Assembly (NCBI RefSeq): GCF_006345805.1
Contig: NC_043014.1
Location: 36,394,001-36,458,000, forward strand
Direction: 5' to 3'
DNA length: 64,000 bases
From: Octopus sinensis
Lineage: Eukaryota
Part shown: positions 13,326-40,894 of the stretch, one piece after another
Layout of the letters: the number at the start of each line of letters is the position of its first letter
How positions within the stretch are numbered: position 1 is the stretch's first letter
The notes under the pieces: model-generated
Told to the model about the DNA's origin: nothing
Database searches by the model: none
The model's input: only the letters and a program-made list of their open reading frames with translations
Program-made: the position numbers and the translations under genes

Positions 13326-13563
13326 TTTCATTTCCAATCCCTTCTGCTTCACCAGTAAGTTACCTTGTGGTATGTGTAGCAGCAATCCAGACTGCTCGGG
13401 GAGTGGAGTAAATCCTTTTTTTTTCTGAACTGCCTCGATGACCTTACAATAAAGAAGGAGCTTCGATAAGGTAGAAATCCTGGTAAGCCTACCACTCCCG
13501 ACGATTCCCTTTGGCATGAATCAACCGAGTCGGAAGAATGCTTAGGAAGCTGTTCAAGCAGCT

Positions 13564-13587
13564 AGGTCAGCAAGGTCAGCTAGGTCA
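13564..13587 (+). promoter_or_regulatory. Three AGGTCA half-sites with 3-nt spacers (DR3-DR3), ~1.55 kb upstream of the gene A ATG
   Basis: AGGTCA gca AGGTCA gct AGGTCA; identical at 40154-40177 in unit B. Function is not demonstrated. Confidence 0.3.
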
Positions 13588-14095
13588 TCTAGTGTCCAGT
13601 GTAGCGTCATATTGAAAAATCTATTAGAAAAATACCAAACAAATGTAGTAAAAAAAAGAAAATGTCTTGACTGCTCTTCTCTTTTTTCTCTCTCTCTCTC
13701 TTTCTCTCCTCCTACGTTCTTTCTCTATATCTTTGTCCCTTTCACTCCCTCCCTCTCACTTTTCCATGACGTTCTTCTTAATCTTTTACTATAACTCCTT
13801 CTTGCCAATCTTCCTTCTTCTCTCCCTTTCTTACTTTCATATCCTTATAACTTTCCCTCACTTTCCTCTCCCGCGTCCTAAGTCGGCGTCTTTTTCTTAA
13901 TCACAATACTTCTTTCACCCAATCTCTCAGTACTTCGAAATTCTCTATCTTTCTTTTCATCCTTGTATGTGTATATGTGTGAGTGTGTGTTTTTGCGTGC
14001 GCATGTGCGTGCGTGCTTGTGTGCGTGTGTGTGTACTTAAGTTTCCGTTTTTAAGAATATTTACTTCCGGTTTTCTAGCGTCCGTGACATTTATA

Positions 14096-14490
14096 TCTTT
14101 ATATATAAAAGTGAAGTTGTGTGTCTCTCTCCTACAATTTAGATCCCTAACTACTCCCACATTTTGCGGTGCAGTATAACCAAAACCGGGTATCTTATAG
14201 TCGTGATTCATATCCAGCCCTTCTGGGTATTAGCGCGCGTCTACGATGAGTCTACGATTTAAAAAAAATTAACATCATTTTTTTCATTTTAATGCATTTT
14301 TTCGCTATTATATAAGGGAAGTAACTCTCTAAAAATGTCTACGATGAGTCAACGATTTAAAAGAAAATTTACCATCATAATTTTTCCATTTTTAATGCAT
14401 CATTTTGCTATCTTTTGGCTATAACTCTCTATAAATGCATATATAGTTATTTCCCTTACAAACCCGAGCAACGCCGGGCGATACTGCTAG
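14096..14490 (+). mobile_element. Complete non-autonomous Helitron, unit A-specific
   Basis: 5' TCTTTATATATAAAAG, 3' hairpin cccgagcaacgccggg plus CTAG, inserted between A and T without a TSD. The empty site is at 40684/40685 in unit B. Confidence 0.92.
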
Positions 14491-14604
14491 TCTCTATATA
14501 TATCTCTTTATCCATCTATCTATTTATCTCAATCTCTCTATATTTCTCTATCTATATCTCACTATCTATCTGTCTATATCTTATCTATCTACCTATTTAT
14601 CTAC

Positions 14605-14718
<114 letters not shown>

Positions 14719-14748
14719 ACCTATTTATCTATCCATCTATCTATTTAT

Positions 14749-14835
<87 letters not shown>

Positions 14836-15125
14836 AGTTTTACCTTACTTCTCGGAGCAGAAAAGAGAAAGAGACAGAAAAAGACAGAGATAGAGAGAGA
14901 GAGGGAGAAAGAGAAAGATAGAGAGAAAAAAAGAAAGAAACAGAAAGATGGGACTTTCAGTTCACTCACACTTCAAGTTTGACTTGCGTTTTTCTCTCTA
15001 TTTCTGTTATGTTTAGCCATTTCGACTACGCTATTTGTAAGAGATATCTTTTCGTAAAATTTCTGCTTTCTGGAAGCCGACAATCATTTCTCCTCCTGCC
15101 TTATACCTGTGACACAAGATCAACA

Positions 15126-15171
15126 ATGTTGTTAGTTATGATGTTACTGATGTCTTCTTACACTTCGGCTT
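15126..15171 (+). CDS. Gene A exon 1: signal peptide MLLVMMLLMSSYTSA
   Basis: caacaATG context, hydrophobic 15-mer ending T-S-A, phase-1 donor T|GTAAGT, conserved in unit B. An in-frame upstream ATG (15009) is open in both copies, so the true start is uncertain. Confidence 0.8.
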
Positions 15172-15365
15172 GTAAGTTAATATTAAGAAACATAATATTT
15201 TTTTCTGTTACAAAACTGAATCTTCTTCTCTGAGATAACATGCTTTCATCTTTGAAAGACACAGTATACACACACGCACACACACTCACACACACACACA
15301 CACACACGCACACACACACGCACATTATCTACACAGCGACGTATACTTTTCAACAGCGTCACCAC

Positions 15366-15977
15366 AAATACCTATTTCTTTACTGCCCACAAGGGGCTAC
15401 ACACAGAGAGGGGACAAACAAGCATAGACATAGTTATTAAGTCGATTACATCAACCCCCAGTGCGTAACTGGTACTTAATTTATCGACCCCGAAAGGATG
15501 AAAGGCAAAGTCGACCTCGGCGGAATTTGAACTCAAAACGTAACGGCAGACGAAATACCTATTTCTTTATTACCCACAAGGGGCTACACACAGAGAGGGG
15601 ACAAACAAGGACAGACACAGGTATTAAGTCGATTACATCGACCCTCAGTAAGTAACTGGTACTTAATTTATCGACTCCGAAAGGATGAAAGGCAAAGTCG
15701 ACCTCGGCGGAATTTGAACTCAGAACGTAACGGCAGACGAAATACCTATTTCTTTACTACCCACAAGGGGCTACACACAGAGAGGGGACAAACAAGGACA
15801 GACATAGATATTAAGTCGATTACATCGACCCCCAGTAAGTAACTGGTACTTAATTTATCGATCCCGAAAGGATGAAAGACAAAGTCGACCTCGGCGGAAT
15901 TTGAACTCAGAACGTAACGGCAGACGAAATACGGCTACGCATTTCGCCCGGCGTGTTAACGTTTCTGCCAGCTCGCC
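15366..15977 (-). mobile_element. Second tRNA-derived SINE family, amplified to three 187-bp tandem units
   Basis: aaatac recurs at 15366, 15553, 15740 and 15927. The minus-strand head has tggcagaaacgtt and gagttcaaattc. Unit B has a single copy (41523-41757). Confidence 0.85.
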
Positions 15978-16681
15978 ACAAATACCATAATACGAACAAC
16001 ACAACACACTGTTTAATTCAGTACACACACCACACACCATCATGCACACTCTCACACCCACACAAACACATAATATCCAAACACAGAGAATATATAGATA
16101 CACACGCAACACGCATAAACACGCATTACACGCATTGACACGGATAACATTCGCTCACAAAAATACACTATAGATGTGCACGCTATTTGATTACAGATAA
16201 ACACACACACACACACACACACACATACACACGTGCACACACTACCTGAATAAGCTCACATGAACGGCTATACGTGCAACACAACAGACACACGCGCACA
16301 CAGACACGTTAACTTCACAAATATACACACGTCCATATGCACACACACACATGTCCATATGCACACACACACATGTCCATATGCACACACACACATGTCC
16401 ATATGCACACACACACACACACATACAGAGGAATACACAAAACACACATTTCTCCACACAACACATACACTAGGTTAATTTTACACACAAACACGAACAC
16501 ACACACACATACATACATACATACATATATGCATACATACATACATACATACATACATACATACATACATACATACTTACATACATACATACATATGTAC
16601 GTAAGTACGTACGTACGTACGTACATACATACATACATACATATATACATACATACATACATACATACATACATACATACA

Positions 16682-16716
<35 letters not shown>

Positions 16717-16821
16717 CCCGTTCTGTCAGTGTTTGTAAAAGTTTATAAAAACAGTATTTTTCAACTGATTTCCTCCTGACTGCGAACGTACGATACTTAT
16801 GTTCCAGGGATGGCTTTAGAC

Positions 16822-17118
16822 CAGTGGTTTTTAACCAGGGTTCCGCGGAACCTTCGGGTTCTACCAGTACAGTCCAGGGGTTCCGCAAGAAGTTACAAAA
16901 CAGCTAGGATCTTTTCATTTTGAAAGCCAGATTTTTCAGATTTTCTAATGAACTAAATAACGCAAGAAGTTACAAAACTGCTAAAATCGGCAGTAATTTT
17001 TAATTCTCCTGTGCAGATATGTGTGCATAAGACTATTAAATTATGGCACAGGGGTTCCTCGAGCCATTGGAATGTTTCCTTGGGGTTCCACTCCAGCAAA
17101 AAGTTTGAAAAGCACTCT
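16822..17118. mobile_element. hAT-type MITE (unit B copy 42385-42602)
   Basis: TIR cagtggttttcaacc...tttgaaaagcactg with 8-bp TSD ctttagac, clean in unit B. The unit A copy has an internal ~70-bp duplication/insertion. Confidence 0.85.
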
Positions 17119-17607
17119 CTTTAGACTCTTAAATTTTCTCACAATATCAGTAACGTGCCCCTTGGGAGCAGAAAAATACATACATCCGTACGCACACACT
17201 CACACCAACCAGTACATGGAATGCATGTCACTTCACATAATGTACACACTGACACACAGAAGTCCACATAATTTTCAGCTAACCCACTCACACACTAGCA
17301 TCCATTCACATAAACACATTCACAGACACCGTCCTCCCAAACACACATGCGCTTGTGCACCTAAGATCCTTGGATATTACCGTTATCGTTATTATTATTA
17401 TCTCACTTTCATTCAACCTCTATTTTCCGGTCATCTCGCCATGTTGGACAATTTTTCTCTGCACTTCCGTTTCTTTCCCAATTTTCTTTATTCTTTCACA
17501 GTTTTCATCATTCTCTCTCCGTTTTTTTCCTCTTAATTCTTTCTGTCGAAAAGCATAAGCTTTTGCTTTCATCCCGATAATAATACACCTGCTGTCTTCG
17601 TCTTCTG

Positions 17608-17676
<69 letters not shown>

Positions 17677-17957
17677 ATATATGTATATGATATTAGCCGG
17701 TGTTTTTCAAACGATGAGTAGCTTTGCGTAAACCATGGATCGTTTTGTTCTCTTACTTTGTTATCATCTTATAATCATCTCATAATAATGACTTTTATGA
17801 CTCGTATTACTACCCCAGTCAATCTAAATGTATATATTTGTCGTTACCTGTCATAATAGCCTTTTTTTAAATTTGCAATGTGCATTTTCGTAGATTTTTC
17901 ATATTTTACCCTTACATTTCCACGTGTATTTTATCTTTTCTTTTTATAACATATTTC

Positions 17958-18048
<91 letters not shown>

Positions 18049-18515
18049 TAAAGTTCAGCAAAATTTAGATCCAGATGAATATGGTACTTAAGTTAAAGGC
18101 ACCAGAATTTGGTATGGTATTATCCATATAAATCAAATGGGGTGATTATAATCAAAATAAGCAACAAGGATATCCAAGGTAGTGTAGTACAATTCTTTCA
18201 TGCTACTTCATTTTATTAAACATTGTAAGTATTACGTCAGTTGTTAAATGTCGAGCAATCTTCAGCCACATATAGAAGTTTTTTTTTAATTAAATGGACA
18301 ATAAACATATTTATACTTATTTCATTTGCCAACATTACAAAGAAGGTAGATATATAGACAAAGAGGTTAATTTCATCATTAAGAACGTGGTGATAGTTTG
18401 TCCTTCTCCATCGGTAGATTTCTTATCACTGGGTTCACTTTTCTATTTAGATCTATCAGTGGGGAGTGGGTTTTTTTTATCTTGGTTCAATGGAGACAAA
18501 CAAGAATTTTCTATT

Positions 18516-18670
18516 TATAGATAGAGGAAGGGGTAGTACAAATGTCAAAACCATAAATCCATCCTTATTATGAAGAATTTAACTTAAGCATATTTGAATG
18601 TATTTTAGCAAAAGTTTGTAGGCTGAAGTGTATGGTTTTGACATTTGTACTACCCTTTCCTCTATCTATA
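18516..18670. mobile_element. 155-bp MITE with 40-bp TIRs
   Basis: tatagatagaggaaggggtagtacaaatgtcaaaaccata and its reverse complement (1 mismatch). The paralog at ~44790-44950 has a decayed left TIR. Confidence 0.75.
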
Positions 18671-18949
18671 AATGTTAACATTTAACATTATTGACCGAGG
18701 TTACCGTGGTATTTTCCGAAGGCTTTTCTTTCCACGGATAAACCCTATTTACTTTCCCCCTTACACTTTACATCATGACATTACTGTGATACACGATCCC
18801 TATTGATCGTTATTTTTCTTTCTTTCCCTTTTACGATCCCTTTTGATCGAAAACCTACCCCACCATTTTTTCTCCCCCCCCATAAAGAACAGCTCTACTT
18901 TGTAATCCGTCCCGTCTGTGTGCAGCCCTGTGTGGCTAATAAAGAAACA

Positions 18950-18997
<48 letters not shown>

Positions 18998-19039
18998 CAT
19001 CTCTCTCTCTCTCTCTCTCTCTCTGTATTATATATATAT

Positions 19040-19403
19040 CTTTCATCTTTTGTCTTTTACTTATTTCAGTCATTAGACTGCAGTCATGCTGGGGCACCGT
19101 CTTGAGATTTTAATCGATTGAATAGACCCCATTACTTATAATTTAAGCCTGGTACTTATTCTATCGGTCTCTTTTGTCACACCCGTAAGTTACGGAGATG
19201 TAAAAACATCAACACCAGTTGTCAAGTGGTGATGGGGAGAAAAACACAGACATACACAGACAGATATATATATACATATATACATAGATAGACATATATA
19301 TACATATATTTGCAACAGGCTTCTTTCAGTTTCCGTCTACCAAATCCACTCACAAGGCTTTGCTCGGCTTGAGGCTATAGTAGAAGACACTTGCTGAAGG
19401 TGT
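19040..19403 (-). mobile_element. Octopus-type SINE, 5'-truncated (unit B copy ~46430-46792)
   Basis: Reverse complement of the 4482-4882 family. Confidence 0.8.
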
Positions 19404-19419
19404 CACTATTAATCAAAAA

Positions 19420-20500
19420 CAGCATTACATCTCTATACAGTCCACCTTTAATATCTGGAAATTTATTACTAAAATAAAATAGAATGTATAGATCAGAATC
19501 AGCAGATCCCATGGTAATGTCAAATAATCATTGCTACTTTCTCTAGCCCAGGACTTATTATCAACTAAAATAATAGATTTTTGAACTCCCAAACTTACTT
19601 TAATTTCTTTAAAATAACGTTAGATTTTTTTCTAGCAGATGAAAAGCATTATTAAGCACAACAGGATTAATAGAAGAATAATAGTTATTAATATATATCT
19701 GTATAAATTTACTTCTATTTTTATTATCCAGTCTAGCAAACCAATAAATAGTTTCCTGTGTATTAGACAAAAGTTCAAGTTTTATGTTTTTCTTGACTAT
19801 ATGTTTTTCTTAAGTATACACATATCAAGAAAATCTTTACTTAATGTACTCAGGTCAGATCGGCCTGGGAAAATTATTCTCACTTCAGAATTAAAAAAAT
19901 TGTTTTCCTTGTGATCTTTTAAAGTTATCCTAGGCCTCATAGATACAAAAGTCTCTGTTCTATCACCAATGTCCTTGTCATTCATAATTTTCTTAGCATC
20001 TAAGTTAATGAACCTTAAAACTTTTTACTTACTACTTTATAATTACTAGTAATCTCTTTCTTCATTTATTCATGATATTTTAATAGATCCTAATCATATA
20101 AGTTTCATTGCTCCATAATTCCATTTTTTTTTTTAAGATCACATAGTAGAGAATTTAGTTTCTTTAAATGTTCAATTTCTCAGAGGGAATATTTAACAAA
20201 TTTAATAGTCTTGACAATATTCCATAAATCGTCTTCAAAAGCCTCCAAATGGTGGTATGGTGGTGGAAATTTCTTCGTCTGAAAGTTCTTTTTAAAAAGT
20301 TCAGTAACTTCTTTATGAGGGTTATTTTCTGTTATAAAATCCTTTTCATGGTAAAAAGCCACCCTACGGATTCTATGAATGAATTCAAATGTCTTATTAA
20401 TCAGATCCTTCATGAAATCCTTTCTAGGTGGAATAGGAAAGTCTTGTAAAGATAAGTGAATCGGTAATTTCTCCATGGAGACCAGCGAAAATATGTTTTA
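19420..20500 (-). pseudogene. Penelope-like element ORF remnant (N-terminal region plus RT)
   Basis: DFPIPPRKDFMKDLINKTFEFIHRIRRVAF...EAFEDDL, ITLKDHKENN and a DITMGSAD-type RT motif, with many stops. The unit B copy (46800-47660) lacks ~215 bp. Confidence 0.8.
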
Positions 20501-21571
20501 ATATTCCTTAAATAATGTACAAATATATTATTATAAATCAAACCAAGAAAAAGAACCATTTCAATCAATATATAATAAACATTGATTTATGATGCTATTC
20601 TCCTCTGATAAACCAAGTAAATTTGTGTTACTTTCTTATTTACTAAGACTAAAGTTTATATTAGTACGAATAAATAAATTAGAACAATTATTATATATAA
20701 TTATATATAATTTTGAACAATTTTGCATATATGAATGTTTCTTGTAGACCCTATAAAATTTAGCATATATCATCATATGTTCTTTCGAACTTGTATATAC
20801 ACATAAAAACTAATGTGTACACTACGGTAGTAGTTGAATAATATTCTTAACGTAGCTTTTTGTTGCAGTTGGCGTCTTCCAAGTAGTCTCACTAATTCAG
20901 TTTTAATCCAAATCAAATTTAGTTTTTAAAAATTATGTTTGACTAGTGATAAGCTACATTTAGACATAAAATACTTAAAGTCTGGTGCAGTAGAACAAAA
21001 GAGAAAAAGCGTATAGACCAAACTGGTTGACTGACGGGTAATAAAGCCCGACATTGGCATTTTGAATCCACACCATTCTTTTAATTTTGATCAATAATTA
21101 TTATATTGATATTAATATGAAAGGAAATGTTAAAAGAATATATTGGTAAAGGTTTCGTAAAATGTTATCCATTAGAAAAAGTTATTAATTTTAATTCTTA
21201 AATTTGTATCAATTTTTGCGTGATATTAAAGGGACTAGACATGTATGAACTAAACTATTTCTTAGTTGCACACACAACAAAAGATAAACGACAACACAAA
21301 TCAATACAAAGTGTTCTATTTATTTTCTTTAGTATAAATTACTTTTTATAAAAAATGAATTTTTTTGCTTAACTTTTTGTAGTGTGGCTTTTTAAAGTCC
21401 ATTTTTGAATAAATTATTTTAACAACAAGATTATTTGATAAAAATATTTAAATTTTTTTATATTTTGTCTCTATGTGCATTTGTACTACCCTTTCCTCTA
21501 TCATGTTGTAGGGCTGCTCAGAAAAGGCAAATGATAAAAATTCTAATATTTTAAGACACTTGCTTCCCAGC

Positions 21572-22830
21572 TACGAGGGGCGTTCAATAAGTAATGCCCC
21601 TGACCCACTTCCCATAGCAGTAGAGCAACGACACTTGGCACAGTTATTAGGCTTTTCCTACATAGGAACTAACCAGAGTTATGCATTTCTCCCATCGTTT
21701 GATACATCTCTGGAGACCGTTTTTATAGAAGACCCCAGCTTGGTCCTCCAACCACGACGTGACTTCAGAAATCAAGGCTGCATCTTCTGGGAAACGCTTT
21801 CCTTTCAAAATCAACTTCATGGCTGGGAAGAGGTGAAAATCAGAGGGTGCAAGGGGAGGAGTTCATAGCTGCACGCCTGTGCTTCTGATCTGGCGACACG
21901 CGAGTTGTGGACCGGAGCGTTGTCCTGCAGGAGGAGGGTGCCTTTGCTGATCTTGCCCCGCCTCTTGATTTTGATAGCTTCTCTTAATTTTCTCAAAAGT
22001 GAAGCATAATAGGCTCCTGTAATTGTGGTACCCTTTGCCAGGAAATCTGTCATCACTACTCCGTCCTGGTTCTAGAAGACTGTGAGCATAACTTTGTCAG
22101 CGGATGGCTGCACCCTTGCCTCCTTTGGAGGAGGTGAGTCACGGTGCTTTCACTGCATTGACTGGGCTTTGGTCTCTGGATCATAGTGATTGACCCAGGT
22201 TTTATCCTGTGTGATCAGTCTTTTGAAAAATTTTGACTCATCTTCTTGGCACATCTCCAAATTCATCCTCGAGCACTCAACGCGTTCTTGCTTCTGGAAA
22301 GGTGTGAGCAACCTGGAAATCCATCTGGCAGACACCTTTTGCATATGCAAATAGTCATGAATGATAGTTTCCACAGACCGGGTACTAATCTTGACCTTAT
22401 GGGCTATTTGGCAAATAGTTATGCGTTGACCTTCCAAAATGGCATCCTCAACTTGACGGACAGACGTCTCATCAACGGCAGAAGGGGGGGCGACCAGATC
22501 TGGGAGCTGTTTCCACAGAGTTCCGACTATGTTTGAATTCACAATGCCAGCGTTTTACAAGGTCATATGATGGGGCATCATCACCATAAGTTACGTTCAT
22601 TTCATCAAAAGTCTCCCGTGGTGTGCGTCCTTTCAAATACAAAAACCAAATCACTGCTCGACACTCAACAGGCTCCATTTCACACTTGACTCAATTCAAA
22701 CACCTGTAAATCAGAAACCACAATAAGTTCAGAGCTGTAATTCGCCACTTTATCTATAGATGCATAAATAAGTGCAAGGCCAAACAACTGCAAGTGGGTC
22801 AGGGGCATTACTTATTGAGCGCCCCTCGTA
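21572..22830 (-). mobile_element. Full-length mariner (1255 bp between TA TSDs), unit A-specific, frameshifted transposase
   Basis: TA-cgaggggcgttcaataagtaatgcccctga ... tcaggggcattacttattgagcgcccctcg-TA, same family as 6943. The empty site is at ~48685 in unit B. Confidence 0.95.
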
Positions 22831-23053
22831 TATGGCTGGGAAGTAAGCGTCTTACAGTGACTCCTAGAGAGAGAGAGAGACAGAGAGACAGAGAGAGAGT
22901 GAGAGAGGCAGAAAGATTTCGATAAATAAATGCATAGATATGCATGCATATATACTAATGTATAGATGTATCAACCAATATATCTATATATATAAATCTG
23001 TCTCTCTCTTTCTATATATGATATACATGTATGTATGTATGAATGTATGCATA

Positions 23054-23098
<45 letters not shown>

Positions 23099-23411
23099 CA
23101 TACATATATTTATATGTATATGTGTGTGTGTGGTGTGTATGTGTCCGTAAATACATACTTATGTATCAAGTCATTTTCAACTGAGAGGTTAGATTTATGT
23201 GCATATATTTACCAGATTGATGACATCTATCAAAGGTTTTTCTCATTGTGTTGATGAACTATTTTCTATGATTAATAAAACTGTCGGTATTTTGACGACA
23301 CGGGTATGTTAGTATAATACAAAATATCAAAAACTATCTCCAAAGTTTTATTTGTGGATAGATGTAATCCGTATTCACAACAACCGTTATTTTTATGGGT
23401 TCTCTTTTTCC

Positions 23412-23467
23412 TACTTCTTCTTTTCTTCTTCTTCTTCTTCTTCTTCTTCTTTCTTCTTCTCTCTTCT

Positions 23468-23499
<32 letters not shown>

Positions 23500-23605
23500 C
23501 TTTTTCTTCTTCTTCTTCTTCTTCTTCTTCTCTCTTCCTCTTCTTCTTCTTCTTCTTCTTCTTCTTCTTCTTCTTCTTCTTCTTCTTCTTCTCTTCTTCT
23601 TCTTC
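23412..23605. repeat. Interrupted (TTC)n tract ~65 bp upstream of the V-exon acceptor
   Basis: Direct reading. Unit B has a pure (TTC)41 at 49370-49492. Confidence 0.95.
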
Positions 23606-23669
23606 CATAGTTACATTTATATATTTTTTATGACATCTATCTCTGATTTATGTTTTTTTTTCTATGCAG

Positions 23670-24002
23670 TTATTGAGATTGCAGATGTATTTCCTTCAAG
23701 AAATATTGATTTTGCACACAAAACATTCTTAACTATAAAATGTCGATATGATATAAAAAATTTTATTCAGTTTTTTCTCGTGCGAAATCACAGTGAAGTT
23801 GTTGTTCAAATGGATTATCTATTGAAGACAGGAAATTTTGTGATAGTAACCAGGAGAAAGGGTTTTCACTGTACTCCACCTATATCACCTATAAGTAAGA
23901 TAGGTGTGATTACCTGCTCGAAACCTTCTCCCTCTTGTGAGGATGCGACATACTACAAATGTTTAACAAATGAAGGATCTTCAGAACCTAGAGTTGTAAG
24001 AG
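23670..24002 (+). CDS. Gene A exon 2: V-like immunoglobulin domain (111 codons)
   Basis: Acceptor (T)n-tctatgcAG, donor G|GTCAGT, phase 1-1. It has the B-strand Cys (TIKC) and the F-strand motif EDATYYKC, 5 Cys in total, and Phe in place of the canonical Trp. Confidence 0.9.
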
Positions 24003-24094
24003 GTCAGTTTACTCGTTCTATTTTTACTTCCGTTTCTTTTTTTGCACGTATTCAATTCCATTATCATTATTTTTATTTCTATTGCGTGTTTCTA

Positions 24095-24478
24095 TTGCAC
24101 TATCGAACACAAGTTTCATCCAATCAGGTCAATTGCCCAGGCCAGCATGACTACCTCTCTCCATCACTCCCGATCTTCCATTAGTATTTTTAGGCCTTCA
24201 AATTGGCATCCAACATCTTCTGCAAGCTGTTGTATATATGTCTTCCGTAGTCTTCCAGTCGCTGTGGTACCGTGATTTGGTGCCCACAACAACTCGTTAC
24301 TAACAAGTTCTTCTTTACTTCTCCAGCAATGGTCAACAAAACCCAACGTCCGCTCTAAGATGATTGATGAGAAAGTTGATACATTCCCGTATAACCTTTG
24401 TTTTGTTGGGTTCTCCCTCCATTAAATGTTGGGCACTGCACGTAATATTCTGGTGTAGGTACCGTCCAGCATGCACTT
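24095..24478 (-). mobile_element. RTE LINE 3' fragment (unit B ~49995-50380)
   Basis: HCWRSKEELVSNELLWAPNHG..GRLRKTYIQQL.ED is a typical RTE C-terminus. Confidence 0.8.
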
Positions 24479-24499
24479 AAGTCCCTCTCTTTCTTTTCT

Positions 24500-24683
24500 C
24501 TCTTTTACTTATTTCAGTCATTTGACTGCGGCCATGCTGGAGCACCGCCTTTAGTCGAGCAAATCGACCCCGGGACTTATTCTTTGTAAACCCAGTACCT
24601 ATTCTATCGGTCTATTTTGCCGAACCGCTAAGTGATGGGGACGTAAACACACCAGCATCGGTTGTCAAGCAATGATAGGGGGA

Positions 24684-24730
<47 letters not shown>

Positions 24731-24927
24731 CTATATATATATATATATATATACATATATACGACAGGCTTCTTTCAGTTTCCGTCTACCAAATCCACTC
24801 ACAAGGCATTAGTCGGCCCGGGGCTATAGCAGAAGACACTTGCCCAAGATGCCACGCAGTGGGACTGAACCCCGAACCATGTGGTTGGTTAGCAAGCTAC
24901 TTACCACACAGCCACTCCCTGGCCTAC
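24500..24927 (-). mobile_element. Octopus-type SINE abutting the exon 3 acceptor (unit B 50960-51417, plus an extra 3' piece at 50400-50535)
   Basis: Full-length reverse-complement copy of the 4482 family; its head ends ~25 bp before the AG. Confidence 0.85.
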
Positions 24928-24952
24928 TCGTTTTTGTTTTTTTTCTTTTCAG

Positions 24953-25258
24953 TGAGATCTTTCATTAAGAAACTTGAATTTCTTAACCCGCCCGCTGAAG
25001 TAAACAAGTTAGCGATCTTCAGATGTTCAGCATACATCGGTGCACCTTTTGGCGCTACTGACTTTTTATGGAGTCATGAGACAAATCACCAGATGTGGAT
25101 AAATGTTAGTCAAGTGCATGTTCGACCTTATGGAAAGTGTTTATCTCCAGCAGTGTCAATTAAGAAAATCCTTATAAGAGAGGGGGACATTGGTAACTCA
25201 AGCGTCTCATGTTCTGTACACAGGATATCACGCACTCTACAACTCACCAACATAACAG
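24953..25258 (+). CDS. Gene A exon 3: C2-like immunoglobulin domain (102 codons)
   Basis: Acceptor ttcttttcAG, donor G|GTAAAC, phase 1-1. Motif AIFRCSA..GAP.G..FLW...C...SVSCSV. Confidence 0.9.
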
Positions 25259-25899
25259 GTAAACAAATTTTCTTTGTGTTATCTTCCTTAACGTCTTTAT
25301 ATATTCTTGTTCCTTAACGTCTCCTGAAGCAATATTTCTGGTTAAGTTACACCTTCCAGTAAATTTGTACATCCACTGACGGTTATATTAACAATTATAT
25401 TTATCCTTGACAGGTATATCATTTCGATTAACCAAATTTATATATTTGCTTTTTTAAGATTCTGGAGACATTTAGTTGATATAAGAAGCTGCATTCTTTA
25501 AATGCACTCTATATGACATGGTTTGCATAAAGTCCTCCTTATGGCGGAAATTGTAGTGAAAAGGTCCGTACAGCACGGAAAAGCGGACTTTCTCTTTATA
25601 AATACATACATACACATGCACGCTTGCACGTACACACGTATGCACACAGGAACGCACGCACACGCACACACACATGCATACACGCACGCACACACTATAC
25701 ACACAGTCGTAGAGAAATGGTGCATCCCGTCCCACGTGGCAAAGTGGTATGACTCAGCCACTATAAAGTCATCAATCATTTGTTGTTTGGTCAGTCAGTA
25801 GTAGCAGAGTTGTTATTTCATTTGCAGGCTAGTTAACATCTTGAATTTTTCTGTGATTTGAATTGGTTTTCACTGTGTTTGACTGTTTTGTGTCCAACG

Positions 25900-26800
25900 G
25901 CACATCGTTTTGCTGCCTCAGGCGGCTTTGTTGACGCTTTCCTCCTTTTTTGAAAGGGGAGGCGCGGTAATGGAGATCGAGAACTGAAAAGGTTAGATCC
26001 TCAGACTTGTCGTCCGAGGAGGATCTTGTTAAAAGTTTGAAAAAGATTGACGAGGCGATGGAGGCCAAGAACTCAAGGCGGTTAAAGATAAATGTGAGGA
26101 CGTATGCTTGGAAGAATTGAATCAATTCAAGGAAATCTTTGAAATTGAGGGGAACGATGTAAATGTGTCCCTTTCCAGTGAGACAACGGAACGAGTTAAA
26201 AGAAGAACCGTACTGTGCAGAACTTACGGTTTGTAATTGCAGCGAACACAGGTCGCAACCACAACACAGGTTGAAAAGGCATAGAGGAAGTGAAGGAAGT
26301 GAATATGGAAGGAAGTGAATTAACTTGCCAGAAGCAGAAGATATGCAACGGGGTAGGTGCGTTTTGCGTCGAAGGCTTGAGCCAGGTAGCATGGCGTGAC
26401 TCCCTTCAAAACGGGTGAAGTGGTCTTTCTAACCATTTACCTGCGAAGGCGTGCTTCTGGGGTAAGGGTAGAAGAGATCCCTCCTTAGGTGGGTGTAGCC
26501 TGGCTGGTTGCTGCCATCCCGTTGGAAATGGCAGATAAGATTGTGAGCTTCCAGGCCAAAAGTGTACCACAAAGAAATTGGCACTGGAAATGATAGTCCA
26601 GGCCGCCGTGGGAGATTCAGAGAAGATGGTAGAAACCATCACATTTGGAGAGGATATAAAGCTGAGAGTCTTAGTGGAGAGCAGGACTCACTGTTGCTTT
26701 AAATGCGGTCAAAAATGCACATAAAACAGGATACACTCCACCTGGCGCAAAGGAACCAACGAAAGAAACCGCACCTCCACCGCTTGCGATGTCATGTGTG
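25900..26800 (+). pseudogene. Tx1/L1 ORF1-like remnant with decayed zinc knuckle (unit B 52420-53260)
   Basis: MVETITFGEDIKLRVLVESRTHCCFKCGQ followed by a frameshifted HIKQD. Confidence 0.55.
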
Positions 26801-27079
26801 AGCAAAAAAGAACTGGAGAAGGAGGAAGATAATCAGGTGGCAGAAGAGAAACATGGATGGAATACGGCACCAAAGAAACTGAAGAATGGGAAAAGAAGAA
26901 ATCAAGGCGAAAATGTGAATTCTTACCCTAATCCCACCCTGCCCTACGCTGTCCCACCATCCTCCTGCAGTCACCAGCAGCAACTCAAAGAACAAGAACG
27001 ACTATTTCTTTATTGCCCACAGGGGCCAAACATAGAGGGGACGATACAAATGAGGGAGGAGTGGATAAAACGAATGATT

Positions 27080-28870
27080 TTAGAATAGATGAATAGTTAA
27101 AAATTTACGTTAAGAATTTTTATAAATAGGATGATACCAAACAATAACCATACAATGAAGTGGGGGACGGGTTTTGCTTCGACCCCGCAAGCCCCATGCC
27201 ACCATTGTAACCTTTTTGTATAATCTTATTGATATACTATGCGGATTCTTCATTCTCAACAAACTCGCTACAACCTTCCATCGTTTTCCGTATACATCAG
27301 GTGACAGGCATTTTATCTCCACCCTTATTTTTCTCTTAAGATGGTAGATGAGGAAATTAACCAGTCCAAGGCTGGAGATGAAGATGCCTCTCACGATTCT
27401 TTTCACGTGGGTCTTCCATACTACTTCTTTCGGTATAGCGACCACAATGAGAAAACGAGCCATGCCTTCTTTGTTAAAAGAGGAAGCAGGAACAATCTAT
27501 ATAATCGACTCGAAAGACAGTTGTACTCTTCCCAGCCTTGTCAGCTGGTGTACAAGGTAAACCCACATTTCGGAAATTTTGGGTCATTGCACAATCGCGT
27601 GCAGAACAGTTTCCCTGTCCTGCTCGCATCTTGGGCGCGCGGGTGCGCAAGGTGCGCCATGCTTTGCGAGTTTATCGCGAATTGGTAAGGCTCCTCAATA
27701 ACCCTGCCAGGCGGGGAATCTTTGGAAGTTATCCAGGGGTCCTGGCCCAAATGTCCTTCGGAACAGGCAGGCCAGTTGGCCATCATCAAAGCCTAGTCTT
27801 CCCCCACATCGTCGTCACACTGAACCTCAACCAACCCTCAATAAAAATACGAGGTGGAACCCCCTCCGCTGGCGTTGCCCATGTGACAGAGAAGCTTGAG
27901 TGCTTCACAACACTTCGCTTGCCAAGCACTCAACTTTCGTCTACACTTGACCCAAGGTCCTAGTTCACCCAAACTAGTAAGCTTAGTAAATAACAACCGA
28001 CCGGACGGAGACCACACCTGTTCACTATCCAGGTAGAGACACAGATTCCTCAGCATCAGCGCACGTCTGCGCATCAACAGCCAAGACATCCCTTGCCCAC
28101 CATTTAGCAGGTGCTGGCAGCAGACAGAGCGCTTTACAAGAGGACTTCGACTCCACAAAAAAAAAACGGAAGAGCAGCCCCTCTAAATTGATCAGCCACG
28201 AACGGGGGCAAGGCACGACGGTTAGGTGGTAGGTAATCACAGAAGCGATAAACACAACTGCGACCTAAAGCCGCCACTCAGACCTAATCTGAGTTAGCTG
28301 GATCACCCTGCTCGTCACCTCGCTCCAATTCTTTATCTGGAGATCTGGACAAACTAAACCCCTAGCATTTTAACCAGCCCCTCCGTCCAACGCCCTACGA
28401 CGTTATTGGGAGGTATCGTCTTGCCTTGCCAGGTGCCGAGTTGCAAGCCGACTGACTTATTCCAGTTAACTTTTGCTCCTGCCTCATAGCCTTTAATGGC
28501 GTTGCCTACCCTCTGTAGGTGTACCATTTCGGACACTATGATGGTGATGTCATTCGCATACGCCGAAACCTTCCCACTGCAACCTAGATCTCGTGGGACG
28601 CACTTTAATCTCTCCAACTTCCGCAGCAAGAACTCTAGAGCCAATACATACAGAAGTGGGGAGAGAGGACACCTTTGACGAACAGAGTGCTTGATGTTGA
28701 ACGGCTTCAAGAAGAACCCGTTCGCCCGAACGATGGAGTCAATGTTACTGTATAAAGCAATGATCCACCCTCTAAAGACGGGGCCGACCCCAAATGCTGT
28801 GAGGACCAACACCGGATACCGATGGTCAACCTTGTCAAAAGCTTTCGACTGGTTGAAATGGACCAGCACC
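27080..28870 (-). pseudogene. Tx1/L1-clade ORF2 remnant, RT to C-terminus (unit B 53550-55140)
   Basis: NQSKAFDKVDHRY, VRQRCPLSPLLY, SAYAND, and a C-terminal KEVVW...HLKRKIRVE..CLS...KRW. Confidence 0.88.
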
Positions 28871-30325
28871 CCACCCTTGCTAGGAAACTCGTTAACACGT
28901 GTTTTTACGCCAAACGGAATGTGCCGTTTATGGCGTTAGACCACGTGAATAAAGTGCTGGAAAGATTATGTCTTGATAAAATTGAAAAAGTCGACCATAT
29001 TAAGGCAAATTGCCCCCTTCTCGATAACCAAACACAAATGAGGGTGAGACAGGAGGAAAGCAGTAGCAACGAGAAGCTGAAGGAAGATACAGAGGAGGAA
29101 AATACAGATGAAGTCCAAGAAACACTACGGGAAAAGTCTCCAAGAACTCCCCACCCTCTAAGAACGCTGAAAAAAGAAGACAAAGTAACTGAGTGACACA
29201 CAAACGCCCACACAGCGACTAACACACGAAAATATATACCAGACAGTCCAAATATATACCAATATTCCAGACTTGCGCGAGCCAACTTTTGATACCGAAT
29301 GTTCAGGTTGCGCGAGTTGTATTCTCGACTTGCGCTTGTTGAGAAAATGTTTATTATCCATGGTTGCATTGTATTGTCTGTTATCTTGTTATCTATTCAT
29401 CATTTCAAATATACATAAAGTAAAAATAATTGTGTTTGAGTAATTGATAACAGTATCTGGTACTCGACTATCGCGAATTTCGAATTGCGCGTCCCCCAAT
29501 TACTCGCGCAAGTCGAGGAATCCCTGTATACACCACCACGTACATACAGTCCAGTAACACCAATAAATTATTCACAAGCACTCACAAACACTTCACGTAG
29601 TGACGGTACAGATTCACTAAGTGATTACGCACGGGCAGGCATACAAGCAGACACAAGAAACACAAAACAATGATAAAAACAGAGCATTTATAACACACTA
29701 CTGGATGAATGCAGCCATAGAGGAAAAAATAGGGAAGATGACGGCAGTAATTAGAGATATAGAAGAAGAAAACATGAGAGACCCAGGTATGGGATGAATT
29801 TTAATTGACAGGAAAAACTATAAAAAATTAAAAGCAAACTGTGGGGACGAAGTAAACCCATTAGGGGTAGAAATAAGACACGATCCTCTGCCTCCTGTGT
29901 TGGATTTCGAAAAACTGAAACCGCTTTCCATTTGCTAAGATAATTATTCGGATAAACGTTGGATTAAAAATAGTGTAATATATAGCTAAAATGGTACTAC
30001 ACGGAAGTGGGTTGGAGGAGTAGCCATTAAATCTTCATTTTTATAGAATTTCATTTCATTCATCCGTTTATGTTGTTTGTCCCACTTGTGCTGTCTAGTC
30101 TGTCCTTGTTCGTCCCCTCTCTGTATGCCCTTGTAGGCAATAGAGAAACAAGGTCAGTCAGTAGTAGAGAAACATTTGGGGAGTTAAAGTTGTATCATTT
30201 GCTGGCGTTATATTGTTGTTTAATTGTTGTAGTGTTCCTTGAACACTTAAGTTTGTGCTGTCTTGCGGCATTTTATATGTGATTTCCCTCCTCATAGAAG
30301 AAGGTAGACTGAATAAAAAGAAAAT

Positions 30326-31097
30326 ATGTCAGAAGAGGAAGATATCAGCTACTCAGAGCTGTCCTCGTCGGAACAGTCGGAGCAATCGTCGTCGTCAGAG
30401 ATTTCGTGGAGTACAATAGAGAAACTGAACGAAGAACGGATAACAGAGAAGAAAAACTTCGCAGAAATCGCAAAGTGTAAGGAATATCAAATCGGATGGG
30501 GAAAATGGAGAAATTACATGACAATGATGGGTCACGAAGGATTTAATGTGGAATTGAACCGCCTCAGAAGAAATGGTTAAAAATAGGAAGGAATGTACAA
30601 TTATATACAAGACGCATTCCGTAGATGCTGGGAAGATAGACATAATGACTACTTACAGAATAGAGAAGGCACTAAGGCCAATCTGGCAAGAGATAACGTA
30701 TCTTACCTGGGGCAAGTATGGAAATGTAGAGGTGAGATTTAAAGAGGCAGAAAAGGCAAGGGAGATCGCGGCAACCATTATAAAGAGTGATGAAGTGATA
30801 CTATTATATATGTACCATAGAAGGCGTGCTTTAAAAGTTAGCGTAGAGGGAATCCCACCAGAAGTTGACGTGGTCTGGATAGCAGCCCCTGTCCTACATG
30901 GAAATGAGAAAGAGATAGCGGTTCTCCAGGCCACAACGACGGAAAGTAGGCATTGCGAAGGCCAAACCTTAAACACGGTCATTCAAGCGCCAAAGAAAAC
31001 TATTGAGAAAATGCCAGAAACGATAACGATAGATGATGTAATAATGGCCCGATTTCAATCAAATTTTCAACATAGTAAAGTGGAAGCGGATTTGTAA
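30326..31097 (+). pseudogene. Tx1/L1 ORF1-like remnant (unit B 55682-56347, with internal deletion)
   Basis: Acidic Ser-rich N-terminus, then GNVEVRF..AEKAREIA and KVSVEGIPPEVD (RRM-like ORF1 style); broken by a frameshift. Confidence 0.55.
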
Positions 31098-32369
31098 TTT
31101 AAGCGTGGAAATGGGTTCAAAGTTTGAAAATTAAGGCAATATTTCTGAAGTTGAAAAAAAATTTCTCATTTTTACGTATTTTTGCTCTTTACTTTTTATT
31201 GTTTACAGTTTAGAGCTTTCATTTGCATGGCCAATCGTCGAAAACTTCACAAAATAAGTACTAAATTTAACAAAGAAATCCATTTTTTCCTTATTTTTAA
31301 TCACTCAAATAGTGACACGTACAAAAGGCATGTGTGCTTTCCGTTTTCACTGCCTGATATTTATGATTGATCTTTCAAAATATTTCCTTTCTCAACTTAC
31401 TCAAGATCTTTTGTTTTTTATAAATGGGAGAGAGATAGATAAAGAAAGATAGAGAGTGAGAGAAAGCGAGGAAGAGTCCGAGAGAAAGGAAGAGTAAGAG
31501 AGTGGGAAAGTGAGAGAGAAAAGAGAGAGAAACAAAGAGGGAGAATGTGGTGATAAGAAACAGAAAGGAGGCAACAGAAAGTAACACCACACCCTCACCC
31601 GCACGTATAGCGGGTCACCTTAAGCTAGTAACATATATTTTTGCGATTTATTTACTTTGTTTCTTTGTTCTATGTCCCCACAAAGAGACATAGAACAAAC
31701 GAAACAAATTAAAGACATCTTCGTTGGAGCAGAATACAGCTGAGTTTAGACAGCAAGAGAAAAGAGAACTACATGTCTGCATCCTGAAGGAATTTCTATG
31801 CGTTAAATAGCAGCTAAATCTCCCTGATGCCTATTCTATCGTACTAGTAAAAGAAAGTTTCATTCGACTATGAAGGCTTAGCTATAAAAGTAAAAATTCA
31901 AAAACACTAACATAATCTCTCTAATTATATCTTTTCATTTAAAAAGTATGAATAACTCTCGTTAATATAATTCAAACCATGTCTAAAGTAAAAGACAGGG
32001 TGTTTACGGAGGGAAAATCTTTGATCATAGGTCAAAGTTATCAGGAATGATCTTAAGATCAGCAACGTAATTCGACTGGTTCCAGCAATTTGACATAAGA
32101 AGAATACTTCACGAGAATGCTTCAGTTTGTCTGTCTGGCATACAATAGGTACTAGTTCATATTTCAGAGATGAGGAGCTTGCAGTAGAAAAATATAGAGC
32201 GTGGCAAGTCAACATAGAAATAAACAAGAACACATACTATAAACCAAAAATTTCAATACCGGTATAAAAGATTTATATTAAACAAAAGGAGAAAGATTGA
32301 ATGAATTTCAGTTCAGGATCAAAATTTGATCATACTTTTCGATTGTATATATATATATAATATATATAT

Positions 32370-32600
32370 ATATATATAGTTAATCCAAACATAAAAACAC
32401 AAAGAGAAAACACAACAACGCGAGGACGTGGAACAACTATAGTATTATTGGACGCTCAGGAAGGAAGGGAAGAAGGAGGGTTTAACGTTTCGGGCGGAGC
32501 TCTTCCTCTGAAATATAGGAGAAGGAAAGATCCAGGGAAGGGAGGACGGAGGAAAAAAATCGCCAACGGTACACACGCGGTCACATTTTGAATGATAAAC
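32370..32600 (-). repeat. Hammerhead-core dispersed repeat, decayed core (orthologous copy 58460-58680 retains CUGACGA)
   Basis: Same family as 2968-3170. Confidence 0.65.
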
Positions 32601-32715
32601 ATTTTGATTTCATTTCCAATTTGGAAAACAAAACTGCATTGAAAACTAAGATAAAAACATAAATATTATGTTTCTATATATTATTTTGTTTATAATTTTT
32701 AATTTTTATTTCTAG

Positions 32716-32748
32716 GTACTGAGCAGAAAGCAATCAGAGACAATGCAG
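32716..32748 (+). CDS. Gene A exon 4: 33-nt stalk (GTEQKAIRDNA)
   Basis: tttctAG|GTACTGAGCAGAAAGCAATCAGAGACAATGCAG|GTATCT, phase 1-1, identical in unit B. Confidence 0.65.
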
Positions 32749-33129
32749 GTATCTTTTATCTTCTAACTTTTGCTTCTTTCAGTTACTGGATGGTGGCCAT
32801 GCTGGGCTATTTTCTAATAGTCTTTGTCGTACTTATTCCCGAACTGATACGTTGTGGGCACGTAAACAAATCAACACTGGTTTTCCAGTGATGGTGGGGA
32901 ACAAACACTAATATACACATATATACATACATACATACACACGCTACACACACTCACACACACATACACACCGACAGCGCGCGCACACAAATATATACAC
33001 GACATTCTTGGGTCAAGCATAGACCTATGCAGGGTATCTGACACCTAGTGTGACATCAGGCGCTCACACCTCTGTCAGCAGGGTATTGGTCTTAGTGGAC
33101 GTTGTACCGAGACCATCTACACACAATTG

Positions 33130-33520
33130 GTGGAGAGTAAAAGTGACAACATCCTCTAGGAATCTCTGAGTGTCAATGAAGGCCAACTGCCTAGTCGTTT
33201 TCGAAGAAGATTTGCGCCGGGTTCCATTGATAATTTACAAAAATTCCTTGCCTGGCAGTGCTACAGAATAACATTGCCGATTCGTAATAAAATGAACCGG
33301 CATGATATTCCCCTCAGCTGCGCTTGCCCTTGATGCACATTGCATGTGAAAGATGATGCGATTAATGAGAAAGAGACCAAACCTTCATTGACGTTTCAAG
33401 TTTAAAAGAAAAGTGAGCGTGGAGTGCAAGGTCCTTCCTCCCAGTAAAACTGTTACACCGTGGATGAATATAGCAAGAATGGCTCGAGTGAATTGTCGTA
33501 ACCTAAGCGTGCCCATGTAG
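33130..33520 (+). mobile_element. Tx1/L1 3' fragment (unit B ~59190-59730)
   Basis: FAPGSIDNLQKFLAWQCYRITLPIRNK and KVLPPSK...WMNIARM. Confidence 0.6.
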
Positions 33521-33971
33521 TTACAGAAGCATGGAGGAGAGAGAAACACAACAGTATTCCTGGTAACAGGGTGACTCAGGATTACTTGGTTACTGTGAGG
33601 TTACTTGGTTACTGTGAGGTTACTTGGGTAGCGTTTCCCTTTTAATTGGGAATTTTGTTGTTTTGATTTTCTTCTGATTATTTATTGTTTACATGTGTTT
33701 ATGTAAATCTCCATTATCCCTGATTACTGTTTCTGAGGCTGCGAGCTGGTAGATTCATGAGCACGCCGTAACAAATGCTTGACGGCATTTTGTCCGGCTT
33801 TCTGCGTTAAAATGCCACCGAAGTTGACTTTACTTTTCATTCTTTCAGAGTCAATGAAATAAGCACCAATTGAATACTGGAGTTGATGTAATCGATGTCC
33901 ACCTTCACCAAAGTTTTTGGTCTTGTACCAAAATTAAAATGAAACGGGCTTTTTTTTTCTTTCTATTACAG

Positions 33972-34051
33972 ATAAATTATATGATGCAAATATTATTACT
34001 AAGATTTTGAAATTTGCAGCAACACTGCTTGTTATTGGCCATTTTCATTAA
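33972..34051 (+). CDS. Gene A exon 5: C-terminal GPI-signal-like tail DKLYDANIITKILKFAATLLVIGHFH*
   Basis: Strong polypyrimidine tract plus ttacAG. Phase 1 is the longest open frame, and it ends in a hydrophobic tail and TAA. The joined CDS is 798 nt, 265 aa. Confidence 0.7.
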
Positions 34052-34147
34052 GGATTTCGGAAAACAAGCCCCAGCAGAATCAAAAAGTGGTTAGTATTGT
34101 ATTTTTCATTTTCGTTCCTTTGATTTTGTTATTCTTCTATATAATAT

Positions 34148-34367
34148 ATTTCTTTACTACCCACAAGGGGCTAAACACAGAGGGGACAAAAAAGGACAGA
34201 TTAAGTCGATTACATCGACCCCGGTGCGTAACTGGTACTTAATTTATCGACGCCGAAAAGATGAAAGGCAAAGTCGATCTCGGTGGAATTTGAACTCAGA
34301 ACGTAACGGCAGACGAAATACGGCTACGCATTTCGCCCGCATGCTAACGTTTCTGCCAGCTCGCCGC
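34148..34367 (-). mobile_element. tRNA-derived SINE just downstream of the stop codon (unit B 60357-60590)
   Basis: Same family as 15366-15977. Confidence 0.8.
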
Positions 34368-35089: not shown

Positions 35090-35395
35090 TAAATACATAC
35101 GTACGTACATACATACATACATACATACATACATACATACATACATACATACATACATACATTCATATATACATACATTCATACATACATACATACATAC
35201 ATACATACATACATACATACATACATACATACATACATACATACATACATACATACATACATACATACATACATACATACATACATACATACATACATAC
35301 ATACATACATACATGCATACATGCATACATACATACATACATACATACATACATACATACATACATACATACATACATACATACATACATACACG
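35090..35395. repeat. (ATAC)n microsatellite
   Basis: Direct reading. Similar tracts occur at 16510-16710, 42190-42275 and 61320-61705. (TCTA)n occurs at 14600-14830 and 40790-40990, and long (TA)n occurs at many sites. Confidence 0.95.
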
Positions 35396-37567: not shown

Positions 37568-37589
<22 letters not shown>

Positions 37590-37599
<10 letters not shown>

Positions 37600-40889: not shown

Positions 40890-40894
40890 CCTTC

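Follow-up and report, generated by a model that had tools for sequence, protein, structure and literature searches.

Why does one exon of a tandem duplication differ between its two copies about three times as much as the introns beside it, and almost entirely by amino acid replacement? This question is raised by a window of 64,000 nucleotides (nt) of the Octopus sinensis genome (contig NC_043014.1, positions 36,394,001 to 36,458,000 of the forward strand), by which we mean the whole stretch of DNA analysed here. A preliminary description of the window had pointed to two copies of an exon encoding a domain similar to the variable (V) domain of immunoglobulins (Ig), copy A at 23670-24002 and copy B at 49572-49904, and had read the pattern as that of a ligand-binding domain under diversifying selection. 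Our analysis makes it probable that the V exon of these tandem paralogues took a burst of positively selected replacements after duplication and has been conserved since.

The two copies of the V exon aligned without gap or indel and differed at 45 of 333 nt (13.5%). The reading frame, which begins at exon base 3, was open in both, and 38 of the 110 full codons changed the amino acid; only two codons were purely silent. These counts agree with the hand alignment of the preliminary description. The next intron stretch differed at 19 of 508 nt (3.7%) and the non-coding columns of the duplication as a whole at 897 of 19,903 (4.5%), which confirms that the exon exceeds its non-coding surroundings about threefold and does so almost entirely by replacement. 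At the non-coding rate the binomial probability of 45 differences among 333 nt was 8e-11. No other segment of 333 alignment columns in the whole duplication was as divergent (45-46 differences against a mean of 15.1, standard deviation 5.5), and the runner-up, with 32 differences, lay within a microsatellite. The elevated divergence was limited to the exon, from acceptor to donor. Both exons were intact and of phase 1 at each end, their acceptor and donor sites were canonical, and all five cysteines as well as the motif EDATYYKC were unchanged between the copies, as had been noted before.

Counted with the NG86 method, the A and B exons comprised S=72.8 synonymous and N=257.2 nonsynonymous sites with sd=2.5 and nd=42.5 differences, respectively. 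The resulting proportions of nonsynonymous (pN=0.165) and synonymous differences (pS=0.034) and their ratio (omega=5.3) were close to the crude estimate made earlier (pN ~0.17, pS ~0.03-0.04). The excess of replacements was significant in a Fisher test of nonsynonymous against synonymous changes (p=0.0009), and pN also exceeded the non-coding divergence (p=6e-13). The differences were distributed over codon positions 1, 2 and 3 as 19:20:6. In neutral simulations, for which 45 mutations were drawn with the background spectrum, this codon-position bias had a probability of P=0.002, two or fewer silent-only codons of P=0.007, and 38 or more changed residues of P=0.001. The neighbouring exon for the second domain showed the 12 replacements reported in the preliminary description (nd 17.5, sd 4.5, and one in-frame codon indel).

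For comparison with a second genome we used 149 kb of Octopus vulgaris OX597833.1 (44,092,008 to 44,240,884). The window matched this sequence (44.09-44.16 Mb) in the same order with ~97.9% identity, corresponding to ~2% divergence, so that it probably represents a sister species or a divergent lineage. The O. vulgaris stretch contained five second-domain exons and four V exons, namely the orthologues of A and B and the V exons of two further units, C and D. All four V exons were 333 nt long and intact with identical splice sites, and the adjacent orthologues of A and B matched the window copies at 109 of 110 and 108 of 110 residues, respectively. Codon models were then fitted to the six V exons (A and B from the window and four from O. 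vulgaris) on the tree ((A,A'),(B,B'),(C,D)).

These models supported positive selection at the level of the exon, of sites and of branches. A single omega for the whole tree (M0) was estimated at 2.84 (p=0.010 against 1). The site model M2a was favoured over M1a (likelihood ratio test (LRT) 9.38, p=0.009) and assigned omega 5.3 to 48% of sites; residues 32, 33, 51, 54, 69, 71, 72, 74 and 85 reached posterior probabilities >0.9. A two-ratio branch model assigned omega 6.7 to the branches between paralogues and 0.25 to the four orthologue tips (LRT 9.13 against one ratio, p=0.0025); for the former, omega=1 was rejected (p=0.0003). The A stem alone gave omega 8.2 (p=0.004) and the remaining paralogue branches 5.2 (p=0.027). 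An omega above 1 was therefore retained with more sequences, both in the six-sequence site model and in the branch model, as implemented by us.

The same pattern was seen without a likelihood model. Between A and each of B, C and D, pN was 0.15-0.165, with pS of 0.034-0.051 and intron divergence of 0.038-0.080; between B and each of C and D, pN was 0.077-0.088, with pS of 0.030 and intron divergence of 0.022-0.056. Parsimony placed 26 replacements and one silent change on the A stem (pN 0.104 versus 0.026 for the intron, 13 of 497 sites), nine replacements and no silent change on the B stem (intron 1 of 497 sites), and 7.3 replacements and 1.7 silent changes on the C/D stem (intron 3 of 496 sites).

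Since the two species split, the V exon has acquired four nucleotide changes in A (one replacement and three silent) and two in B (both replacements), with intron divergence of 1.4-2.0%. The low omega among orthologues (~0.25) indicates a burst followed by conservation rather than ongoing fast evolution, and supports an episodic mode of selection, with a burst after each duplication and purifying selection since. The earlier proposal of diversifying selection thus stands for positive selection as such (omega 5.3; p=0.009 and p=0.0003) and not for continuing or allelic diversification. As an ongoing process the fast evolution of the exon is contradicted by the orthologues, which changed at one (A) and two (B) of 110 residues, and the comparison with the second genome ~2% away gave no sign of allelic hypervariability.

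What kind of domain was reshaped in this way? The fold was most similar to an Ig V domain, and we regard exon 2 as encoding an Ig V-like fold with moderate confidence; the V-like label given beforehand is kept on these terms, although Pfam detected nothing in the window copies. The cysteine pair C24-C97, in strands B and F, is separated by 73 residues, within the V-set spacing of 65-75. In an alignment of 37 family V domains C97 was invariant and C24 was present in at least 90%, and the invariant core comprised F65, C67, C82, K84, C89, D91, Y95 and C97. The F-strand motif D-x-[AG]-x-Y-x-C is present as EDATYYKC, its D91, Y95 and C97 being invariant in the family. The tryptophan of the C strand was absent, as the sequence there reads QFFLVRN and the consensus of the 37-sequence alignment is F-x-L without W. 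A profile of the family found as its best matches in the PDB T-cell receptor V-alpha domains over their full length (E=0.004-0.017), followed by the V domains of PD-L1, CRTAM and CEACAM, whereas searches of the PDB with profiles of only the two window sequences returned noise. Among the 37 family members Pfam matches were all below threshold (ig 2.4e-5, Ig_2 3.6e-4, V-set 0.29), and one member is labelled in UniProt as Immunoglobulin V-set domain-containing.

An AlphaFold2 (AF2) model computed from the two-sequence alignment was all-beta with seven strands, and strands 42-50 and 55-60 lay between strand 33-38 and strand 66-68, that is, between C and D. The 50 best Foldseek matches of this model were all antibody VH or VHH domains (probability ~1.0, TM 0.45-0.60, E 0.008-0.08, none at or below 0.001), in a PDB whose richness in antibodies biases such a list. 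When placed on this model, the replacements between A and B appear to cluster in the BC loop (29-33), the C'-C'' hairpin (43-58), the D strand and D-E segment (66-77) and the FG loop (98-106). Strands B, C, E and F, as mapped on this mid-confidence model, and every cysteine were fixed between A and B.

Support for an Ig domain in exon 3 was of a different kind. The residues C24, W39 and C86 were invariant in 19 members, with a cysteine spacing of 62 residues, and the exon, labelled C2 beforehand, may be called Ig-like on this C-W-C motif only. It had no Pfam match, its structure model reached a predicted local distance difference test (pLDDT) score of 35, its profile matched CL domains in the PDB at non-significant levels (E 0.23 or worse), and an hhalign comparison of the V profile with the second-domain profile found no similarity.

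Taken together, these results suggest a sequence of events at the locus. After each duplication the V exon would have gained selected replacements with omega ~5-8, while silent sites and introns would have collected only neutral change of 3-5%. The replacements would have been placed in predicted loops and the hairpin, with strands B, C, E and F and the cysteines held in place. Since the two genomes split, each paralogue version would have been kept by purifying selection (omega ~0.25), and gene conversion, which is active in the cluster, would not have homogenised the V exons. The outcome would be a germline array of recognition domains, alike in structure and distinct in surface, and we infer that the V domain binds a ligand.

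Several points weigh against this account. The selection tests rest on six sequences with very few silent changes, ~3 in the A-B pair, and were run with our own Goldman-Yang-type likelihood models (F3x4) and not with PAML or HyPhy. The models assume a single tree and independent single-nucleotide changes, so that gene conversion in the cluster and multi-nucleotide events would inflate omega. Tandem dinucleotide changes make up five of the 45 differences and would inflate omega in this way. The same holds for an 18-nt stretch found in exon A only, a 9-nt direct repeat (CACCTATA at 23877 and 23886) encoding the peptide PPISPIS, where a single templated or slippage event may account for several of the clustered A-specific changes. 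Mosaic states common to other paralogues occur at 11 of the 38 variable residues. Genes A and B are known here from DNA sequence and the annotation of relatives, and the O. vulgaris model of gene A (CAI9737732) uses a donor within the exon, at 23895, giving a truncated V domain. As for the fold, Pfam matched neither copy's exons even at E values up to 10, the AF2 model had a mean pLDDT of 62.7 and a predicted TM score (pTM) of 0.55, and the Foldseek E-values were 0.008 or worse.

The multi-nucleotide changes lead to one alternative, a local mutational process without selection such as clustered multinucleotide mutation, templated repair or slippage, which we consider very unlikely. Besides the five tandem dinucleotides and the 9-nt repeat, it would fit 10 changes within 36 nt (23867-23901) and the enrichment of A<->G differences on the coding strand (19 of 45 versus 24% in the non-coding background, Fisher p=0.013). 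Such a process would, however, neither spare third codon positions (19:20:6) nor end at splice sites. Collapsing adjacent differences to single events still left a 3-fold excess, and collapsing those within 5 nt a 2-fold excess. Moreover, the excess recurs independently on the ancestral branches of B and of C/D, and the exon has been quiet since the species split.

Gene conversion deserves closer attention, since it was directly seen at this locus. In a tract 770 bp downstream of the V exon, beginning 180 nt upstream of exon 3, copies A and B differed at one site in 300 nt. The A sequence of the window differed here at 0-1 sites from B of the window and of O. vulgaris, but 13 differences separated it from the O. 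vulgaris A sequence, its orthologue. The tract is a recent B-to-A conversion in the lineage of the window; conversion is thus active in the cluster, yet the V exons have remained distinct. Within the second-domain exon the first 42 codons were almost identical in all copies. In the 3' part (25074-25258 versus 51563-51750) B, C and D were nearly the same and A differed, with pN and pS both ~0.10-0.12, which looks like older or imported sequence; the missing exon 3 codon and the TxIT ending of A recur in unit E, the fifth of O. vulgaris. With the neighbouring exon, introns, silent sites and conversion tract as internal controls, selection can be told apart from conversion.

It could be supposed from these signs, among them the pN and pS of ~0.11 in the 3' half of exon 3 in A, and from the 11 mosaic residues, that the difference in the V exon was likewise imported into A or B from a third, more divergent paralogue, an explanation that had been raised beforehand. 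We judge it very improbable. A distant donor would have carried silent changes along, but pS of the V exon (0.034) is at the intron level and did not exceed 0.051 in any of the 15 pairs among the six V exons. Copy A has 19 unique residues (B has eight), which no other close paralogue carries and which distant ones lack except for one short shared motif. Informative sites of the V exon favoured one tree by 9:1:1, the same tree as the intron (the upstream introns of the four paralogues were not alignable because of insertions of transposable elements (TEs)), and the divergence ends at the splice sites. Even a shuffling of variants with dN >> dS among the donors would still require positive selection.

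Conversion could also have acted in the opposite sense, if the duplication were old and its introns and other exons had been homogenised, leaving the V exon to show its true age by having escaped. The demonstrated conversion tract would agree with such a history, as would the near-identity of another segment, 27331-27530, and we still regard it as very improbable. Third positions account for only six of the 45 differences, and pS was 0.034 against a pN of 0.165; had dS equalled dN in an old exon, ~12 silent differences would be expected, and 2.5 were observed. The units also carry many independent TE insertions and an even divergence of 3-7% over 25 kb, unlike a mosaic of fresh tracts.

That copy A is a decaying pseudogene or under relaxed constraint is very improbable, despite its having the most unique changes (19 versus eight residues). 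A-specific substitutions at 23895-23900 have created a consensus-like 5' splice site (A|GTAAGA), where B reads GATAAG without GT. This is the donor used by the O. vulgaris annotation CAI9737732, which joins V residue 74 in frame to exon 3; strands E to G would be lost. Relaxation, however, cannot lift dN over the neutral rate, and pN on the A branch was 0.104 compared with 0.026 for the intron. Both genomes preserve the 110-codon frame, the five cysteines and the two splice sites intact, stops arose in all but 18% of the neutral simulations, and since the split A has changed at one of 110 residues with omega <1. Finally, a misassembly of two haplotypes of one locus in tandem, for which only the general risk in heterozygous invertebrate assemblies speaks, is scarcely credible, as the units differ by many TE insertions and the independent chromosome-scale assembly of O. 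vulgaris likewise places the A-type gene next to the B-type gene in that order and continues with C and D.

Positive selection on the V exon concerns two complete genes. Genes A and B each have five exons and encode ~265 residues, every internal exon being of phase 1-1 (Table 1). The exons encode, in this order, a signal peptide, the V-like domain, the second Ig-like domain, a linker of 11 residues and, at the C-terminus, a short hydrophobic tail, so that the product begins with MLLVMMLLMSSYTSA and ends with ...DAN-IITKILKFAATLLVIGHFH-stop. The predicted first exon was later matched by the N-terminus of O. vulgaris protein CAI9737731 (MLLVMMLLMSSYTSAFIEIADV...). Exon 3 is joined in frame to exon 2, as it is in O. 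vulgaris CAI9737732 and CAI9737734. The mini-exon was revealed by annotated O. vulgaris proteins and its peptide occurs in CAI9737732 and CAI9737733, and the C-terminus encoded by exon 5 is the same as in O. vulgaris proteins. In several relatives the tail is hydrophobic and no cytoplasmic part follows; in one, a transmembrane segment with a tail is present. Judged by the tail, the family probably consists of small cell-surface proteins with a glycosylphosphatidylinositol (GPI) anchor. A transmembrane-like open reading frame (ORF) at 34003-34239 was rejected as a candidate for the last exon, as it has no phase-compatible acceptor and annotated relatives confirm the other frame. The read-through ORF of exon A had nothing on record in public assemblies.

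Table 1. Positions in the window of the exons of genes A and B, the two duplication units and the gene-conversion tract.
Feature	Position	Strand	Description
Gene A exon 1	15126..15171	+	ATG and signal peptide MLLVMMLLMSSYTSA; GTAAGT donor, phase 1; predicted from sequence
Gene A exon 2	23670..24002	+	V-like Ig domain; 333 nt, phase 1-1
Gene A exon 3	24953..25258	+	Second domain, Ig-like by motif only (C...W...C); 306 nt, phase 1-1
Gene A exon 4	32716..32748	+	33-nt mini-exon GTEQKAIRDNA, phase 1-1; identical in A and B
Gene A exon 5	33972..34051	+	DKLYDANIITKILKFAATLLVIGHFH and stop; hydrophobic C-terminal tail without cytoplasmic part
Gene B exon 1	41253..41298	+	Signal peptide
Gene B exon 2	49572..49904	+	V-like Ig domain, counterpart of exon A
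Gene B exon 3	51442..51750	+	Second domain; 309 nt, one codon more than A
Gene B exon 4	58795..58827	+	Mini-exon
Gene B exon 5	60180..60259	+	Hydrophobic C-terminal tail and stop
Duplication unit A	12971..39570	+	~26.6 kb; contains entire gene A; right end placed by the repeat period
Duplication unit B	39571..64000	+	Contains entire gene B; cut off by the window end
Recent B-to-A gene-conversion tract	24773..25073	+	End of intron 2 and first 121 nt of exon 3

Separate genes, as opposed to an array of alternative exons of the Dscam type, are suggested by the fact that every unit contains an exon with ATG and signal peptide and a stop exon of its own. Annotated O. vulgaris models nevertheless combine the V exons of adjacent units, four in CAI9737731 and two in CAI9737733 (without the second domain), and CAI9737738 comprises five repeats, each made of a V domain, a second domain and a mucin part. 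These models are either fused mis-annotations or genuine splicing across units. Given the phase 1-1 internal exons and these cross-unit models, combinatorial diversity could also arise if exons of different units were spliced together.

With the two-sequence V profile as query, a HMMER scan of 1.84 billion representative proteins matched 32 relatives. The 24 that were looked up belonged to O. vulgaris, O. sinensis and O. bimaculoides, plus one from a sequencing-run assembly, and by these matches the family appears to be confined to the genus Octopus. The relatives were annotated as uncharacterised or 'Ig-like domain-containing', and one as V-set. Word-index protein searches with the V or second-domain exon found no relatives, and with the family profile four distant members only. 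The O. vulgaris proteins CAI9737731 to CAI9737738 are encoded consecutively on one chromosome, in a cluster on OX597833.1 with at least eight V exons over ~290 kb. A literature search that included the locus names found no paper on this octopus family.

Which known receptors does such a cluster resemble? Receptors of the CD2/SLAM type, among them the GPI-anchored CD48 and CD58, have an ectodomain of a V and a C2 domain, encode one domain per phase-1 exon and are arranged in a tandem cluster. The octopus genes share the design established for these receptors, with a signal peptide, a V-like domain, a second Ig-like domain and a GPI-like tail. They differ in that no sequence homology was detectable, and in the octopus V domain three further cysteines are conserved and the C-strand tryptophan is missing; the resemblance is therefore one of design and not of membership. 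In tandem receptor families such as primate KIR/LILR and CEACAM and amphioxus VCBP, young paralogues have neutral flanks, and dN exceeds dS only in the Ig domain that faces the ligand. The octopus family is like them in its dN > dS between paralogues; those families have known ligands, are often pathogen-driven and usually show allelic polymorphism as well.

Among invertebrates, the Alr family of Hydractinia comprises 41 genes with V-set and I-set domains (PMC11999971). Both this family and that of Octopus are lineage-specific tandem clusters of Ig superfamily (IgSF) surface genes with a variable, membrane-distal V-set-like domain, which in both is barely recognised by ordinary sequence profiles. 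Alr proteins, however, are type I transmembrane proteins with cytoplasmic tails, whereas the octopus tail resembles a GPI signal. Domain 1 of Alr is hypervariable between alleles and serves homophilic self-recognition, whereas the octopus domain varies between paralogues and is nearly identical between orthologues. The fibrinogen-related proteins (FREPs) of the snail Biomphalaria glabrata have N-terminal IgSF domains and diversify by point mutation and by recombination or conversion among tandem copies (PMC11999971). FREPs are, like the octopus proteins, a molluscan multigene family with N-terminal IgSF domains; they are secreted, have a C-terminal fibrinogen domain and are reported to diversify partly somatically, whereas the diversity seen here is in the germline. 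As no fibrinogen domain was matched by Pfam in the window exons or in ten relatives, and the gene model ends in a 26-residue tail, the octopus locus was ruled out as a FREP locus. Cephalopods do not figure in a 2025 review of invertebrate IgSF proteins (PMC11999971).

The genes described here form a tandemly expanded family, apparently octopus-specific and with the V domain first, in which selection after each duplication probably reshaped the outer domain only. The two intact genes of the window and at least four adjoining ones offer targets for asking what octopus cells or haemocytes recognise. It is a tentative idea, which we hold to be possible rather than probable, that the cluster is an octopod-restricted, germline-diversified repertoire of V-type recognition domains used in immune, self/non-self, neuronal or gamete recognition. 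Cephalopods have large brains and long lives among invertebrates, and we know of no diversified recognition-receptor family described for them. If the family were such a cephalopod recognition repertoire, the significance of the locus would be greater; if it reflected only routine divergence of an adhesion molecule after duplication, its value would lie mainly in annotation. The gene models of the O. vulgaris cluster are fused or truncated, and the five-exon structure could correct them.

The setting of the two genes is a head-to-tail duplication with a period of ~26 kb, seen by self-comparison of the window (self-BLAST and MAFFT global alignment). Homology between the units begins sharply at 12971/39571 and was traced to 37609/63990, where the window stops; the A/B junction is contained in the window without an N gap. 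In the global alignment the units differed by 4.7% over 20,545 aligned columns, with numerous unit-specific TE indels and a fairly uniform divergence of 3-7% across 25 kb. The segment 27331-27530 stood out with one difference in 200 aligned columns, compared with the average of 4.5%, and could represent either a conserved element or another tract of conversion. Insertions of 0.5-1.3 kb specific to one unit were found in both units.

In both units the V-exon acceptor is preceded, at a distance of 65-80 nt, by a long (CTT)n microsatellite (23425-23604 and 49372-49494). This microsatellite is interrupted in A and runs uninterrupted for 123 nt in B, and makes a very long polypyrimidine tract before the V exon. 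Repeats in the window include (CTT)n microsatellites, copies of SINEs, and fragments of mariner, LINE and PIF1-helicase sequences, with transposon-bearing stretches at 1-2972, 6940-8152, 9115-11353, 21572-22828 and 54669-55001. The PIF1-like (Helitron-type) helicase is present as two fragments in tandem, and LINE reverse-transcriptase ORFs also occur. A Mos1/mariner element carries HTH and DDE domains, and a 92%-identical copy of it lies upstream of exon A and is also present in O. vulgaris.

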